Positions 15,045 through 46,127 of a DNA stretch of 64,000 nucleotides are shown in pieces (position 1 is the stretch's first letter; the number at the start of each line of letters is the position of its first letter). The stretch is from positions 1 through 64,000 of the forward strand of contig NW_020844212.1 of NCBI RefSeq assembly GCF_003704095.1, written 5' to 3'. This DNA comes from Pocillopora damicornis (lineage: Eukaryota). Under the pieces are notes generated by a model. It saw only the letters and a program-made list of their open reading frames with translations. It did no database searches and was not told where the DNA came from. A program made the translations under genes and the position numbers.

Positions 15045-18000
15045 ATGGCCTCCGCAAAGGATGAAAATTGCATAAGTCCATATAGGAGACTTCTCCTAGA
15101 AATGTCGATGGAACTGTCTAACAAAGATCTGGAGCGGTTGATGTATGCTGTAGGGGATCGTCTTCCCAGGAGATTGACAGAAAACATAGAAAGCGGACTG
15201 AAGTTATTTGAAGCACTCGAACAAGATGTACACATTGGTCCACAGAATCTGACTTTGCTACATGATGGGTTTAAAGCGATCGGCAGAGTGGATCTTGCGC
15301 AAAGCATTCAGGTTTTTTCAAGAAAACTCCACAAAGCTGATGATGATCCGGATGAGACTGACGGTAATTCTGTATAGGGTGTATCTTGTAGAGACAAAAA
15401 ATATTACTCAATCGTTGTCGCATCGGTCGCAAACGTCAGTCTTTAGATCCGAGTTTCTTAGAAAAAAAAAAAACAAATAAGTGTTTTGATGCAAATCTGG
15501 AAACTGACTCGAATTGCTTTATTTAATATTTACAAACAACAGGAATATCTGAATAAAAAATATCCTTTACCCGTAAAATTATTTTAATACTTAAAAGTTC
15601 GATCTGAATTCGACAACGCGGTAATCAAGTTGCAACATAAACATCTTAGAATACTTCGCCTTACAGAGCTCTGCACACCTCGCTTTTTAATTCCCAAACC
15701 TAAATTTTTTAAGCCATAAATTACCACTACTAAAATATTAAGAAAGTGAGTTCAGGTAAAATTATTTAGACACAGGAAATTTTTTTATATTTGTTATGAT
15801 TTTGTCTTAACTAGATGGGCAAGGTGACATGGTTCCTGACGGGGTAGGGGACGGTAGTGATCCGGAACCAAAAGGAAGTGATTTTCCTGACAATGGTGCC
15901 CGAAAAGGTACAGATACGAATAAACTTAGTGAACTGGTTCATTCTGAGTATCGCTCCATAATAAAGAACTTTTTTTCTAATCTTATTTTAAGTTTTAACC
16001 CAACAATTTTTTCCAGTGGAAACCTTAAAACCTGGCGATTTGAGCTTTTAATTAATCCAAGTTCTTCCCCCTCTCCCTCCCACCCAACTCGGCCCTAGAT
16101 AAGGAAAAAAGGAATCACGTGGGGTATAACATCATGCTAGCAACGTATCAAGAAAAGCGGATCGGCCTAAAGTTGAGCAGGCTTTGTTTAATGAATAGGG
16201 CCTTTTCTTCCAACTCAGCAGCTGCAGCTGACGAACATGTCATGACATTTCGATCTGTAGTTGATCAGCCACATCCTGCGAATCCTAGAAATACTTCAAC
16301 AGGGTTAAGTGGCGGTGATGCGGATGGCCGTACAGCTGAACATCTTGTTGCTGTCAGAAGTGATGCTTCGCTAACTGTTACAAATAATGGTGAGAACCTG
16401 AAAAGGGAAGGAAATTAATACTTTAAATACTTTAGGAATGTGGACAACAAGTGAACTACTTATAAAACTTTATGCGTCACTGTTGCTTTGTGAACGTTTA
16501 AATATATGCTTTGGGCAGTTTAACTGATCTCTGGGTAGCAAATTAATTGAAGCAGTTTCCAATTGAGTGTCAAGACTAACCCGAGATTTCTTTGCTTTTG
16601 CTTATCTTCGCTTAGTGATTGGTCAAGAAATCTCGAACCACTTTCTGAAACAATCATGCAGATTCGAAACTAAAACCGATTCTCGCGTTTGAGGCAGTTT
16701 CTCTTTTTCACTAGGAGTTTTCACTGGCTATTTCTGATGATTTCCTTTGTTCTGATTGGCTGTTGTCATCAATGTGGTTTGTGTGTGAAATCTCTTTCCT
16801 TCTTTAAATTTCAGGCTCCTCTTTAGAATCTGCGCGGGGACCCTGTCCTGCACCTTCTCGGGATTTCGTCCTTGAATCGTCTGCTCGACTCCAGCCTGAT
16901 CCAGCTGCAGGACCTGCACCTGCTCGATACGTGAACTTTCTGGTTCACGAGGGCTACGTCGTGGAAATCCTGGGAGGAAAACACTATAAGACCCCTGATG
17001 GAGAATTTGTAGAGATGAAGAGTGGGACGCAATATAAAATACACGTCAAAAATTCTCATGCTTATGGTAAAAGTCATACATATTACTGTTTCAAAAACAC
17101 TTTTCAACTTTGTCACCATGTCAAATTGGGGTGAAAACACACTGTTAAGTTTCAATGGACTCCTCTTACTGACTGCGCTACCACGTTCTTTTTGACAAGA
17201 ACTTCACCCCTACCCTGATGAACGGACCTGCACCGGTCCCCATCCAGAAAATCATAACCAGGGTGACTCTTTATTTTCGCTGGTGCATGGGGAACACCTC
17301 ACTGCACTTCATTTGCTTAGAGGTCAAGAGACGTTATAAGCGTCTACCAATTATACAATTTCTTTCTCACTTTTCATTGAGTCCCTTTCGTTTCTTTTTG
17401 CATGGAAGACTGAATTCGTCAATACTCTATGATGAAGATCTCGATTTTATACATATAAGATCATTGACCACTTGCGCCTTTTTTCCAGGTTGCCATGTCG
17501 ACATATCTATTGATGGTTATGACGTAGGGGGATGGGCTCTCCGCGGTGGAGAAGAGATGTCAATAGAAAGACCAGCTTATGAGGCCAAGAAGTTCACCTT
17601 CTACCGAGTGAAAACTGCACCGAAAGAGGCAGGAATTGAATCTGGCCGGCCCGAAAATGGAGTTGTTAAGTGCGTGTTCACACCTGAAGCTTTTCTTAAC
17701 ATTCCAGTGATCACCTCTGACTCGTCTCAGCCTTTGAATGTGAGCATGCCTCCATCGGCGACAGTTGGTGAGTTGAAACGTAAATTGCAGCACCAGATGG
17801 GAGTTATGGATGACCCCTATCAAGTTCTGGCTAAAAGCGACAAGGTCCTATCAAATGGTACACGACTACGGTAAGAAATATAAAGCCTACAAGCCTATAG
17901 GATGATCCTTTGGATGGCGGACTAGTAAGGGATAAAATCTTGTCAATTTTCTCTTTTTTCCATCAGAGATATAATTGAGAAACCCATGGATTTGAGACTA

Positions 18001-18153
18001 ATAGATGCAGAAATATCAATTACAGTAACAGCCGAGGCGTGTTCCAATTGTCCTTTTCCAATAAAGGTGCATCCCGGCAAGGTAAAGGTCCATTATCTCA
18101 TGGAACAGATAGAAGGGAAGATTCAAGTCCCAATCAGGGATCAAAAGCTTTAC
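15045..18153 (+). CDS. DED-domain / beta-domain / multi-ubiquitin-like protein, paralog 1, 5' part
   Basis: GT-AG exons in one continuous frame: 15045-15363 (DED with DLE..L and GRVDL = RxDL motif), 15815-15907, 16219-16389, 16815-17066, 17489-17870 (beta domain ..ISIDGYDVGGW..IERP..KKFTF..NGVVKCVFTPE then UBL1 ..ATVGELKRKL..) and 17967-gap 18153 (UBL2 ..IEGKIQVPIRDQKLY). Confidence 0.85.
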
Positions 18154-43900: not shown

Positions 43901-46127
43901 CTCTCTATTACTCTTGTAATTTACAGAAGAGGATCTATCCTGTGGTTTCTCTGGAATTTGTGAGTAATTTTCTTGCTTGCATTGCAAAGCAATTTGTCTA
44001 GTTTTAGAGACTCGTCAGGCCCCTTCCCAAAAAGCAGGGGCTGAAAAAGCTAAAATGAAGGGTGTTCCTCAGAACCTTTTTTTTCGTATTTGTCATTGTG
44101 ATGAGGATCATGTGGAGGAGCTTTGGATCAGCCATTCTCGATCAGATACATACAGTATATGAATTTGATTTCTGTTTGACTTGAAGAATTTAGGCAGGGA
44201 TGCGAGATTCTAGGTGCATATGATTCGTATCTCAAAGATACGTTTCGTTTCTCGATGTTTCTTTCTCTGATACATATGGGATACTTTAGCTTTCGAATGC
44301 CAGATAATCGCTTGATAATCAGATAACTTCCATCAAGTATTTCAACTTTTCAATTTCCCCTCTCATTCTCTAACGTCATACGGTACAATTAACCAAAACC
44401 TCTTTACTTACTGAACTTCCCTGTGCAAAAAGGAAGAACATTATTTCCTGTCACCGAAATGTGTCCCTTATAGAAGCAGACAAATCAAAATAAACAGATC
44501 TCCCCTTTTCTATTTCACTGCTATGTCTACAGAAAGAATTCATTTATGACTGAGAAATAAGGCCTCAGAGGAAGAGGAGGAATGAGAGAGTCGGACGCGA
44601 TTACTACGCGTACCATCCCATGTTGGAAACTTTTCAATTTAAAATATGCGTGAATAAGTCATTCTTCAGTTTACTGAATTTAAGTAGACTGTTTCTCTCG
44701 ATTATTTTGCATTCGAATTTCCCACCTCGATGATACTGTGTGCGATATTTCCCGGCTATGATTCTGAATTATATCATCTTGCTAATGCATCGATCAATTC
44801 CAAGCTTCAAAATCTCCCTTCAGGGAACCCAATTGGCCCACCCACGGACCAGATTTAACGGTCAATTTTTATGCAAAAGACAAAATCAGGGTCGTGACTT
44901 TCTACTCATTGACCAAGCTTTAAAACTTGTAAACCTTGTAGACCTTTTCTTCTGAGCTGTTCGTCAGTGAAAGTGAACTTTACCTATTAAAAGATAAAAC
45001 GCGTGTATTCCTTTGGAAAGACTTGACACTTCCTTCTCCACCCTAGCTGGGAAAGGTTCAAATACCCCAACCCCTGGGCAAAGAAAACAGTCAAATACCC
45101 GTGGGTTTTTCCTGGTAAAGTGGTTGAAATTTAGAGTTGGTCGGCACATAACCAAGTGTAAGGCCGTACTTGGGATTATTGGCCCGGGGTCTTCGGTGTG
45201 GGTTGGCAGTATGGACTGAGCGCAGGGAGGTCTGTATTTTAACAACCGAAGGCCAATATTTCCCTTACGTCAAGAGCAAGCGAGGTTAGTAGGCAGTTTA
45301 TCTCATGGCACTCAGACCAAGCTTGTTTATTTTATTTTTACTAGCTTTCAAAAAACGCACAGCTTATGACCGTTTCTGTGGTGGAAACGGACCTCAGGGC
45401 AAAATCCCAATCAAATAAGAAAACTAGTCTGAACGCTTAGATCTACCCCAGGACTACCTTGCCATATAAATGCAATAATAATACAATCGTAAATATGTCC
45501 TAGAATATTTGTATATCTGCCGTCAATGCCCTTTTCCTATTACATGTAAAGTTCACGGTTGTGCCAATGTCGTTGAACCGGATCCAGCATGGAGATCAGG
45601 TGGAACAACATTACAAGGCCACAGTACACAACAGTTTACCAAGGCTGAACCAATAAGAGTGGATCATTCACGGAGGGTGGAACTGGTAATCAGGCTTGTA
45701 GCCAGGTAATACACCACTTAGCACATTAAAAAAGGGACGGGTCAGTTATTTGTTTTGGAATAGTTAGTCCTTCGTACCTGGCTCGACGATTAGCCGTTGT
45801 TATGGAAATGAGCCGTGTATTATCTCCTAGGTACGACTTGAGAGAGTAGCGGTATTCGACCTAAATGTCTCTCGTTATTACAAGGATGTTTAAACAAGAG
45901 CTTTTCTAAAGTAACCCCGAGCTGTCACGAGCTAGGTACAAAATTGTTTAGGGAAAATTTTAACACAGTCATTTACGACCAAGGAAAACCGGTTTCTCCA
46001 ACACCGAGGGCGAGTTGTAGATGTTAGTTCTTTGTTGTTAATATTCTTGTATGTCTCTCTACTTTTTAGAGATGGAGAAAAAGATCTAGAATTTCCCAAA
46101 GGTGAATGTAAACCGCTGTCAACTCTG
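37975..46127 (+). CDS. 3' part of a DED/multi-UBL gene: UBL3, UBL4, microexon array, C-half of the beta domain
   Basis: Exons gap-37975-38380 (UBL3 and UBL4), 38539-38623 (DYGVAHGCTLRV), 39083-39105, microexons 39957-39989, 40585-40617, 41268-41300, 42733-42771, 43087-43125 and 43927-43959, then 45552-45705 (WRSGGTTLQGHSTQQF..VELVIRLVAR) and 46070-gap (DGEKDLEFPKGECKPLSTL). Phases chain consistently with no stops. Confidence 0.8.
39170..39629 (+). mobile_element. Degenerate LINE (CR1/L2-like) AP-endonuclease fragment
   Basis: Frameshifted RGGGV, RPPNS, WDVSLPTINW (GDFNLP.INW-like), QLVDSRTR and LDLALTNAP motifs. Confidence 0.65.
39630..39871. mobile_element. PIF/Harbinger-type MITE
   Basis: TIRs TGCCCCATTCACACCA / TGGTGTGAATGGGGTA with TAA on both sides. 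Confidence 0.7.
39885..44120 (+). repeat. Tandemly duplicated intron-microexon-intron modules
   Basis: ~39895-40420 is nearly identical to ~41205-41720. Shared blocks recur 3-7 times: gctctaaagaactaattt..ctctattactcgtgtattttacag, gtgagtaatttt, tttgccattatgaggaggat, the G-rich/C-rich hairpin and gagtgctcactt..gcaccacagcctcttacatgttta. Confidence 0.9.

Follow-up and report, generated by a model that had tools for sequence, protein, structure and literature searches.

Does this locus encode one protein, in which a DED is followed by a β-rich domain that is split by a string of ubiquitin-like modules (UBLs), or do its parts belong to several genes? And if there is one protein, what might it do? 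The locus lies in a 64,000-nt stretch of the genome of the coral Pocillopora damicornis (contig NW_020844212.1, positions 1 to 64,000; hereafter, "the window"), from an assembly of 234 Mb in 4393 scaffolds. A preliminary description of the window, made from its letters, had assigned all of the parts to a single gene spanning 31 kb. All of the motifs listed in that description lie where it had placed them, on the + strand; the borders are AG/GT and the phases match. Our analysis indicates that this is, almost certainly, one transcribed gene, and that it encodes an N-terminal FADD-like DED, a linker, and one immunoglobulin (Ig)-like sandwich with a UBL-loaded loop. The order encoded is DED, Pro-rich linker, N-terminal half of the sandwich (N-half), four UBL-sized modules, a linker coded by microexons, C-terminal half of the sandwich (C-half) and a Pro-rich tail. 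The gene has ~810 codons on the + strand, and occupies ~11 kb when a 19.8-kb block that is most likely mis-scaffolded is left out of the count.

The gene and the block within it

The 5ʹ and 3ʹ exons are separated by the 19.8-kb block at 18154–37974, which interrupts exon 6 and has N gaps on either side. Exon 6 encodes the junction of UBL2 and UBL3 and is cut by both gaps, such that the sequence re-emerges at 37975 in the middle of a ubiquitin-like module. The corresponding locus of Pocillopora meandrina (L011) is gap-free, is colinear with the window and has no such block. Window positions 14150–18153 correspond to 9106–13129 of the P. meandrina locus, 37975 onward to 13244 onward, and 43871–46128 to 17864–20126, with RPL14 next in both species. 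The 5ʹ part of exon 6 runs on uninterrupted in P. meandrina, the 3ʹ part is 96% identical to the sequence from 13244, and the two flanks are 114 bp (38 codons) apart, in frame. Hence, the preliminary description was right to join the flanks, but the 31-kb span is an artefact of the assembly, and the intervening block is foreign to the gene, most likely through a scaffolding misjoin. One difference between the two loci lies at 13475–13600 in P. meandrina, where there is a frame change inside UBL4 relative to the window; the annotated P. meandrina model (P0095) skips this part and reads into an intron, and is consequently truncated.

The exons were concatenated only for a frame check at the 3ʹ end and for comparison with a deposited model at the 5ʹ end. 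All searches and folding used single exons, separate pieces or database proteins, and the gaps were left unfilled, with only their lengths reported. The reading frame is open from 37975 to 46127, and all exon borders are AG/GT except for the two ends at N gaps; the stop codon and the last ~7 codons fall inside the gap at 46128. At the 5ʹ end, the borders of exons 2–4 yield residues 1–290 of P0094, a deposited model ("pdam_00010298, partial [Pocillopora damicornis]"), and the first exons of the window reproduce the start of that model exactly. Beyond its start, P0094 is a chimera that stitches paralogous fragments into this gene. Exon 5 bridges the N-half and the first UBL; used as a query, it found 90 database homologues at E ≤ 1e-3, most of which span the N-half core and the start of UBL1 together. 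No further domain was detected in the protein beyond the DED, a disordered linker and the sandwich with its loop inserts.

The gene is expressed. Of the words sampled from the UBL3/UBL4 exon, 97% occur in runs of polyA RNA-seq, and RNA contigs were compared with positions 39750–45749, so that the splice joints cover the 3ʹ part of the gene. In two runs (X1 and X2), microexons at 39957–39989, 40585–40617, 41268–41300, 43087–43125 and 43927–43959 are connected by GT..AG joints (39988>40584, 40616>41267, 41298>43085 and 43124>43926). A further joint, 43959>45555, leads into the C-half, with the AG acceptor placed at 45550–45551, and a loose end of RNA past 45705 reads the last exon. In runs X7 and X11, joints 40616>42386 and 42419>43927 replace the middle microexons with one at ~42387–42419, and the UBL4 exon is connected at its 3ʹ end, by a loose end of X7 at 40582, with a 23-nt exon and then with 40585. 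The choice of microexons differs between the two pairs of runs, through alternative splicing or because the strains or species differ. Unspliced RNA contigs also span 43930–45581.

Relatives of the gene keep the same order of parts in contigs that have no introns. Two intron-free contigs from Joint Genome Institute (JGI) samples, most likely transcripts from other corals, encode P0093 (596 aa; contig L012, 2467 nt) and P0100. In both proteins, four UBL-sized modules are followed by an acidic linker and then by the C-half and tail; in P0093, the N-half is also present. Other relatives are single open reading frame (ORF) genes of 367–440 aa, in which a DED, N-half, one UBL, a spacer and the C-half are in one frame; one of these is an annotated protein of the octocoral Dendronephthya gigantea. 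A profile search of the P. damicornis genome found no single-UBL gene of this kind (P0096 type). What the genome does have is a gap-free, UBL-less paralogue on scaffold C2136 (G000:C2136:180383–189730, L008), with DED, N-half and C-half in 9.3 kb, which has counterparts in P. meandrina (P0092) and Stylophora (P0087, P0088 and P0091). Another family member, of which only C-half exons were seen, lies just upstream (C2136 197156–197890, L009). The preliminary description placed the DED, both halves, the UBLs and the linker in a single gene, and this is borne out by the colinear P. meandrina locus, the exon phases, the RNA joints and the homologous transcripts and ORFs. The same colinearity and the same homologues argue against the assignment of the 38–46 kb exons to a DED-less transcript.

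The N-terminal domain is a bona fide DED by sequence. Its ORF (15045–15377) matches Pfam PF01335 with 69.2 bits, against a gathering cut-off of 35.9 (E 3.7e-19), and exon 1 encodes RVDL, an RxDL-type motif. The RxDL charge-triad motif in helix 6 is the defining mark of the DED family, whose members assemble with FADD and caspase-8. In a model of the homologue P0096, the DED superposes on that of FADD (Z 12.9, root-mean-square deviation 1.2 Å over 79 residues), on that of caspase-8 (Z 12.2) and on that of PEA-15. The profile search also gave ~20 further DED-only matches in the P. damicornis genome, which fits a large repertoire of DED genes.

The four modules in the loop had all been described as UBLs, a description that is well supported for the last two and weakly supported for the first two. 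The UBL3/UBL4 exon matches Pfam Rad60-SLD with 34.4 bits (cut-off 23.8) and ubiquitin with E 5e-5, UBL3 and UBL4 match each other in hhalign at 93%, and the coral homologue P0093 matches Pfam ubiquitin with 46 bits. UBL3 and UBL4 can therefore be assigned, on solid grounds of sequence similarity, to the ubiquitin family, and they are clear members of it. UBL1 and UBL2 (17692–18153) are weakly ubiquitin-like: they are module-sized, have only sub-threshold ubiquitin-family Pfam matches, and show no significant hhalign match to other UBLs (probability <5%, with thin alignments). Their ESM features lead to ubiquitin clusters at 0.85–0.88, which we treat as a lead only. Many UBL and ubiquitin chains can be superposed with the single UBL of P0096, among them linear ubiquitin chains and the tandem UBL of chicken OASL (Z 11.7).

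Table 1. Exons of the gene, contents of the intervening block and neighboring features in the window.
Feature	Position	Strand	Content and borders
Exon 1	15045..15363	+	Start codon and DED (Pfam PF01335); phase-1 end
Exon 2	15815..15907	+	Acidic linker; borders reproduce deposited model P0094
Exon 3	16219..16389	+	Linker; borders reproduce P0094
Exon 4	16815..17066	+	Pro-rich linker, then first sandwich strands (N-half part 1); matches start of stand-alone domain and profile
Exon 5	17489..17870	+	N-half core to FTPE strand (17491–17691; first 67 codons), then start of UBL1; phase-1 acceptor
Exon 6, 5ʹ part	17967..18153	+	End of UBL1 and most of UBL2; cut by N gap from 18154
Exon 6, 3ʹ part	37975..38380	+	UBL3 (start lost in gap) and most of UBL4; phase-1 end
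Exon 7	38539..38623	+	Last strand of UBL4 and start of linker; AG/GT borders, frame, RNA loose end
Exon 8	39083..39105	+	23 nt; phase 2 to 1; found via RNA loose-end letters; frame stays open
Microexon array	39957..43959	+	33 or 39 nt each, all phase 1; RNA GT..AG joints
C-half exon	45552..45705	+	GGTTLQGHSTQQF strand and RLVAR strand of sandwich; RNA joint; aligns with C-halves of stand-alone domains
Last exon	46070..46127	+	Start of conserved P-L...Pro-rich tail; cut by gap at 46128
Intervening block	18154..37974		Three small contigs with paralogous exons; second DED gene (−); BTB-BACK-Kelch gene; DHX38/PRP16-type gene
Second DED gene	23314 to 20420	−	DED 23314–22982, N-half exon 20737–20420
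BTB-BACK-Kelch gene	23826–25652	+	Inside block
DHX38/PRP16-type DEAH-box helicase gene	~27–37 kb	−	Named from helicase motifs in ORFs
RPL14	46863–48790	−	Downstream; named from ORF motifs
Dolichol-phosphate mannosyltransferase (DPM1)-like gene	58997–61932	+	Downstream; named from ORF motifs
287-aa ORF	1716–2579		

Within the intervening block, the three small + strand contigs (18254–20243) carry further versions of the N-half core and of two exons, one UBL3-like and one for the end of UBL4. Block-wise inversion of this region would yield one coherent minus-strand paralogue together with the second DED gene. The remaining gaps listed for the window (18443–21985) all fall within the block, outside the gene described here.

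A sandwich domain with an insertion hot-spot

What is the domain that the UBLs interrupt? We searched 1.84 billion cluster representatives with a profile (A3) that was built from pieces of the two halves alone and excluded the DED and the UBLs. The profile matched 2069 proteins at E ≤ 1e-3, 1064 of them at E ≤ 1e-10. The top 150 matches are mostly proteins of 200–280 aa; in about half of these, one stretch covers both halves, and in most others there are two stretches. The exons of the window were themselves recovered by the sandwich profile. Alignments of the family (A4 and A5) have a Cys, IDG, ERP, FTF, F.PE, a variable stretch, GGT.L.G.S.Q.F, a D, RL and a P-L...PVPPP tail. All of the invariant positions are preserved in the window; the one change is in a nearly invariant G-L pair, where Val replaces Leu (the window reads NGVV).

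Structural models suggest how the halves fit together. In the AlphaFold2 (AF2) model of a stand-alone bacterial member, block means of the predicted local distance difference test (pLDDT) are 84–98 over residues 1–110 and 170–206 (94–98 over 1–110), and the loop between the two halves is disordered. The model of a member with a DED and one UBL (mean pLDDT 81) has the DED, the strands of the N-half and a ubiquitin fold, followed after a disordered spacer by the strands of the C-half, which are modeled with confidence. The three pieces from the window, given as separate chains, dock with an ipSAE of 0.58, whereas the best control reaches 0.01. At least 93% of contacts are shared by the three runs, with a partner pLDDT of at least 62, and the docking tool rates the result as weak support. 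VIA-align matches the model to Ig-like sandwiches (MSP, ASH/PapD-like, PKD and FN3) across residues 3–207 with Z 7–8. The best fold matches in the PDB are the MSP, PapD-like and ASH sandwiches (Z 7.5–8.0 over 93–109 residues), and all of these scores are at the level that is generic for Ig-like folds. Together with the profile, which had the insert removed, the models indicate that the two halves are, as the preliminary description had proposed, one domain with the insert in a loop, and that its fold is a generic Ig-like one.

Foldseek of the stand-alone model against the PDB gave no chain better than E 0.03, and the same search, and VIA-align, with the DED/UBL model was filled by ubiquitin and DED chains, which is uninformative on the sandwich. 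By sequence, the sandwich has no significant match in Pfam, NCBIfam, PHROGs, PADLOC or the PDB sequences. The Pfam family Cep192_D4 was a sub-threshold match in 6 of 36 members (best E 3e-4). A match to DUF7918 (E 0.08–0.2) in two proteins was not reproduced in other members and was dropped.

Which organisms have the domain? The relatives that had been suggested for it from bacteria, phages and giant viruses were all found, by profile, in IMG/VR loci and by Foldseek against BFVD. The bacteria include Tolypothrix, Scytonema, Hassallia, Plectonema, Spirulina, Haloferula and metagenome-assembled genomes (MAGs) of Gaiellales and Cytophagaceae. In seven loci of filamentous cyanobacteria (L021–L026 and L029), the sandwich gene lies on the same strand between a PGM/PMM (phosphoglucomutase-type) gene and a Ham1/ITPase gene, an order that may reflect the close kinship of these genomes. 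Sixteen IMG/VR loci carry the domain. A Gp23-type capsid gene and a sigma factor gene are neighbors at one of these and ChaB and Dam at another; hence, we regard the loci as phages. Neighbors of the domain in the ESM Atlas are mostly Uroviricota. A tblastn search of cultured phage records gave no match, and a scan of viral contigs with the octocoral-type alignment gave no relatives.

Among larger viruses, Foldseek against BFVD matched proteins of Marseillevirus (E 1e-17), Pithovirus (E 2e-17; TM 0.65/0.66) and infectious spleen and kidney necrosis virus (ISKNV ORF098; E 4e-13), and also of Yasminevirus, Sylvanvirus, Edafosvirus, a shrimp nudivirus and ChoanoV1. [quoted passage not shown] A structural match to ranavirus ICP-18 (E 2e-2) is at noise level and was not used.

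In animals, the sandwich is fused to a DED in five phyla, with examples from corals, an octocoral, Lingula, Acanthaster, Patiria and Branchiostoma; the groups named for these fusions are Cnidaria, Brachiopoda, Echinodermata and Cephalochordata. Animal members with no DED are found in a scorpion, in amphioxus and as two large Lingula proteins. In a EukProt transcript (P0149, 702 aa), a TIR domain is followed by the N-half, ubiquitins in the same loop and the C-half. Named members are labeled "uncharacterized" or "hypothetical", or at most "DED domain-containing protein". We found no paper on the DED/UBL/sandwich layout or on the sandwich domain, in agreement with the earlier statement that no named animal gene has this layout.

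Variation in the length of the domain is confined to the loop that connects the FTPE strand to the GGT strand. This loop is a disordered stretch of ~50–90 residues in bacterial and phage members, in amphioxus and starfish, and in the coral paralogues that lack UBLs. The octocoral type has a single UBL there, with GG.GG at its end, and a disordered spacer; P0093, P0100 and the gene described here have four UBL-sized modules and a linker; and the TIR-fused P0149 has ubiquitins, one of which is followed by a Gly run. In two other proteins the GGT strand motif that opens the C-half is itself repeated inside the loop (three times in P0141 of Montipora foliosa and twice in P0189). The FTPE–GGT loop is the insertion hot-spot of the sandwich family, and the alignments and AF2 models agree with the earlier statement that F.PE and GGT.L.G.S.Q.F flank a variable, disordered loop in the relatives.

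Possible functions of the loaded loop

What is the functional significance of a sandwich that carries UBLs in its loop? That this sandwich is joined to a DED in five phyla, and elsewhere to a TIR domain, argues for a context of death or immune signaling. The stand-alone copies in many large DNA viruses suggest a context of conflict. Of the viral proteins, Wsv390, also known as WSSV449 and AAP-1, is the one that has been studied: it reportedly blocks apoptosis and is bound and cut by caspases, as for a P35-type inhibitor-substrate (PMC3317351, PMC4728583). AAP-1 also activates NF-kB (PMC3171479). The structural match suggests that Wsv390/AAP-1 may belong to the sandwich family, and it makes a protease-facing loop plausible.

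We propose, tentatively and by analogy, that the loop is presented by the sandwich to a protease, with the DED coupling the outcome to caspase-8-type assemblies; we consider this reading possible, at somewhat less than even chances. The DED would bring the protein into FADD/caspase-8-type DED assemblies. The sandwich would be the regulatory part and would present the loop as a protease-facing element. Its target could be a caspase-type enzyme, toward which the loop would be reactive or serve as bait, as in AAP-1, or a protease or deubiquitinase of a pathogen, for which it would be bait. If the loop were cut or bound, the integrity of the sandwich and, hence, DED signaling would change.

Several observations weigh against a protease-facing loop that signals through the DED. 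The match to Wsv390 is structural only, with 10% identity. The many invariant polar residues of the family could mark a ligand-binding or catalytic site that is unrelated to proteases. Gene neighborhoods of the bacterial and phage copies contain no conserved partner gene, PADLOC gave no hit, and the bacterial loops are not acidic. All four modules in the window end with no C-terminal Gly-Gly. Lastly, VEPD, just before the C-half, was considered as a caspase site and set aside, since it is followed by Pro, and caspases disfavor Pro after the cleavage site.

A broader proposal is that the sandwich is a "reactive-loop" module. In phages and large DNA viruses, stand-alone copies would serve as pseudo-substrates or decoys for caspase-type host proteases, with AAP-1 as the one studied example. 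Marine invertebrates would have wired the same module to a DED or TIR domain as a protease-sensing switch, and corals would have loaded the loop with UBL bait that is diversified by alternative microexons. This scheme is speculative and unlikely.

An alternative explanation is that the UBLs are decoys for pathogen deubiquitinases or proteases, with cleavage splitting the sandwich and freeing the DED for death signaling, by analogy to NLRP1 and CARD8. The loop is hypervariable, and viruses carry the same domain. Furthermore, the UBLs of the octocoral-type single-UBL genes end in Gly-Gly (GG.GG) ahead of a disordered spacer, and a ubiquitin of the TIR-fused relative ends in a Gly run. However, no such end is present in the four UBL-sized modules, either in this gene or in other reef corals. 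Moreover, the DED is N-terminal, and the release of a C-terminal death fold, as for NLRP1, is inapplicable. We consider such a tripwire unlikely.

Alternatively, the tandem UBLs, like those of OASL, might mimic polyubiquitin and draw ubiquitin-binding signaling proteins to a DED platform, with the sandwich as a scaffold that tolerates inserts. This would suit UBL3 and UBL4, which are tandem ubiquitin-family domains, and the superposition of the P0096 UBL on the OASL tandem UBL and on linear ubiquitin chains. Nonetheless, UBL1 and UBL2 are very divergent, and the DED and sandwich are kept in UBL-less paralogues and in orthologues from four other phyla. Since UBL-less relatives keep the DED and the sandwich, the sandwich, and not the UBLs, is the conserved partner of the DED, and we consider a polyubiquitin mimic quite unlikely.

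A third alternative, which we regard as very unlikely, is that the C-half strands, on their long loop, insert into the N-half of a neighboring molecule, such that chains of molecules cluster their DEDs (cf. donor-strand complementation). PapD- and MSP-like sandwiches are among the fold matches, and the GGT motif is repeated inside some loops, but those fold matches are generic and the AF2 models are confident as monomers.

Finally, it is highly improbable that the 15–18 kb and 38–46 kb exons come from different genes or from a broken pseudogene: in this assembly, 20 kb and two other genes separate the parts, the exon they share is cut by gaps and the deposited model is chimeric, but the colinear P. 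meandrina locus, the open frame through all of the 3ʹ exons with their RNA-supported joints, and the order of parts in homologous transcripts and single-ORF genes all argue for one intact gene.

Comparison with known systems

The sandwich defines a large family, with more than 2000 cluster representatives, that has no Pfam, NCBIfam or PHROGs model and no related PDB sequence, and that ties bacteria, phages and large DNA viruses of aquatic hosts to DED- and TIR-bearing proteins of marine invertebrates. It is also a clean example of domain-in-domain insertion at one conserved loop. For research on coral cell death, the gene is an expressed candidate that joins DED signaling with ubiquitin-like modules. 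If AAP-1 is a family member, as suggested, the function of the family becomes testable. A further outcome concerns the P. damicornis assembly itself, in which we point out a probable scaffolding error and a deposited gene model that is chimeric.

How does the coral protein compare with better-known ones? Like FADD, caspase-8, cFLIP and PEA-15, it has a DED that scores above the Pfam cut-off and has the RxDL-type motif. In contrast to these proteins, it combines the DED with an unnamed sandwich, and not with a death domain, caspase or pseudo-caspase. AAP-1 and proteins of Marseille-, Pitho-, Mimi-, Irido-, nudi- and nimaviruses match the stand-alone sandwich by Foldseek, with E-values of 1e-17 to 4e-13 for the giant-virus proteins and ISKNV ORF098, and 8.8e-6 for Wsv390. 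Unlike the coral protein, these viral relatives stand alone, without DED or UBL.

The likeness to NLRP1 and CARD8 is conceptual: a β-rich domain that can exist as two associated pieces, a fast-evolving disordered stretch and a death-fold output. The β-rich domain of NLRP1 and CARD8 is ZU5-UPA, whereas that of the coral protein is Ig-like, and their death fold is C-terminal, whereas the DED is N-terminal. With OASL, ISG15 and polyubiquitin, the coral protein shares tandem β-grasp modules in an immune-type protein; its modules differ in being located inside the loop of another domain and in their lack of a Gly-Gly end.

In phyletic pattern, the coral gene parallels the fusions of a DED to TRADD-N. 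These and other lineage-specific DED fusions of marine invertebrates, many of them sessile, have been described from cnidarians, brachiopods, echinoderms, amphioxus and bacteria of multicellular habit (Kaur et al. 2021, PMC8195603); a term look-up in that paper found no mention of the sandwich module or of a UBL domain-in-domain insertion. As far as that account goes, the coral gene shares with the DED-TRADD-N fusions not only the phyletic pattern but also an N-terminal death-like adaptor and a variable C-terminal module with prokaryotic relatives, although the partner module is not TRADD-N. Thus, DED fusions of marine invertebrates are of a known kind, the partner sandwich and the insertion of UBLs into its loop are undescribed, and the gene looks like a new part of invertebrate cell-death or immune signaling.

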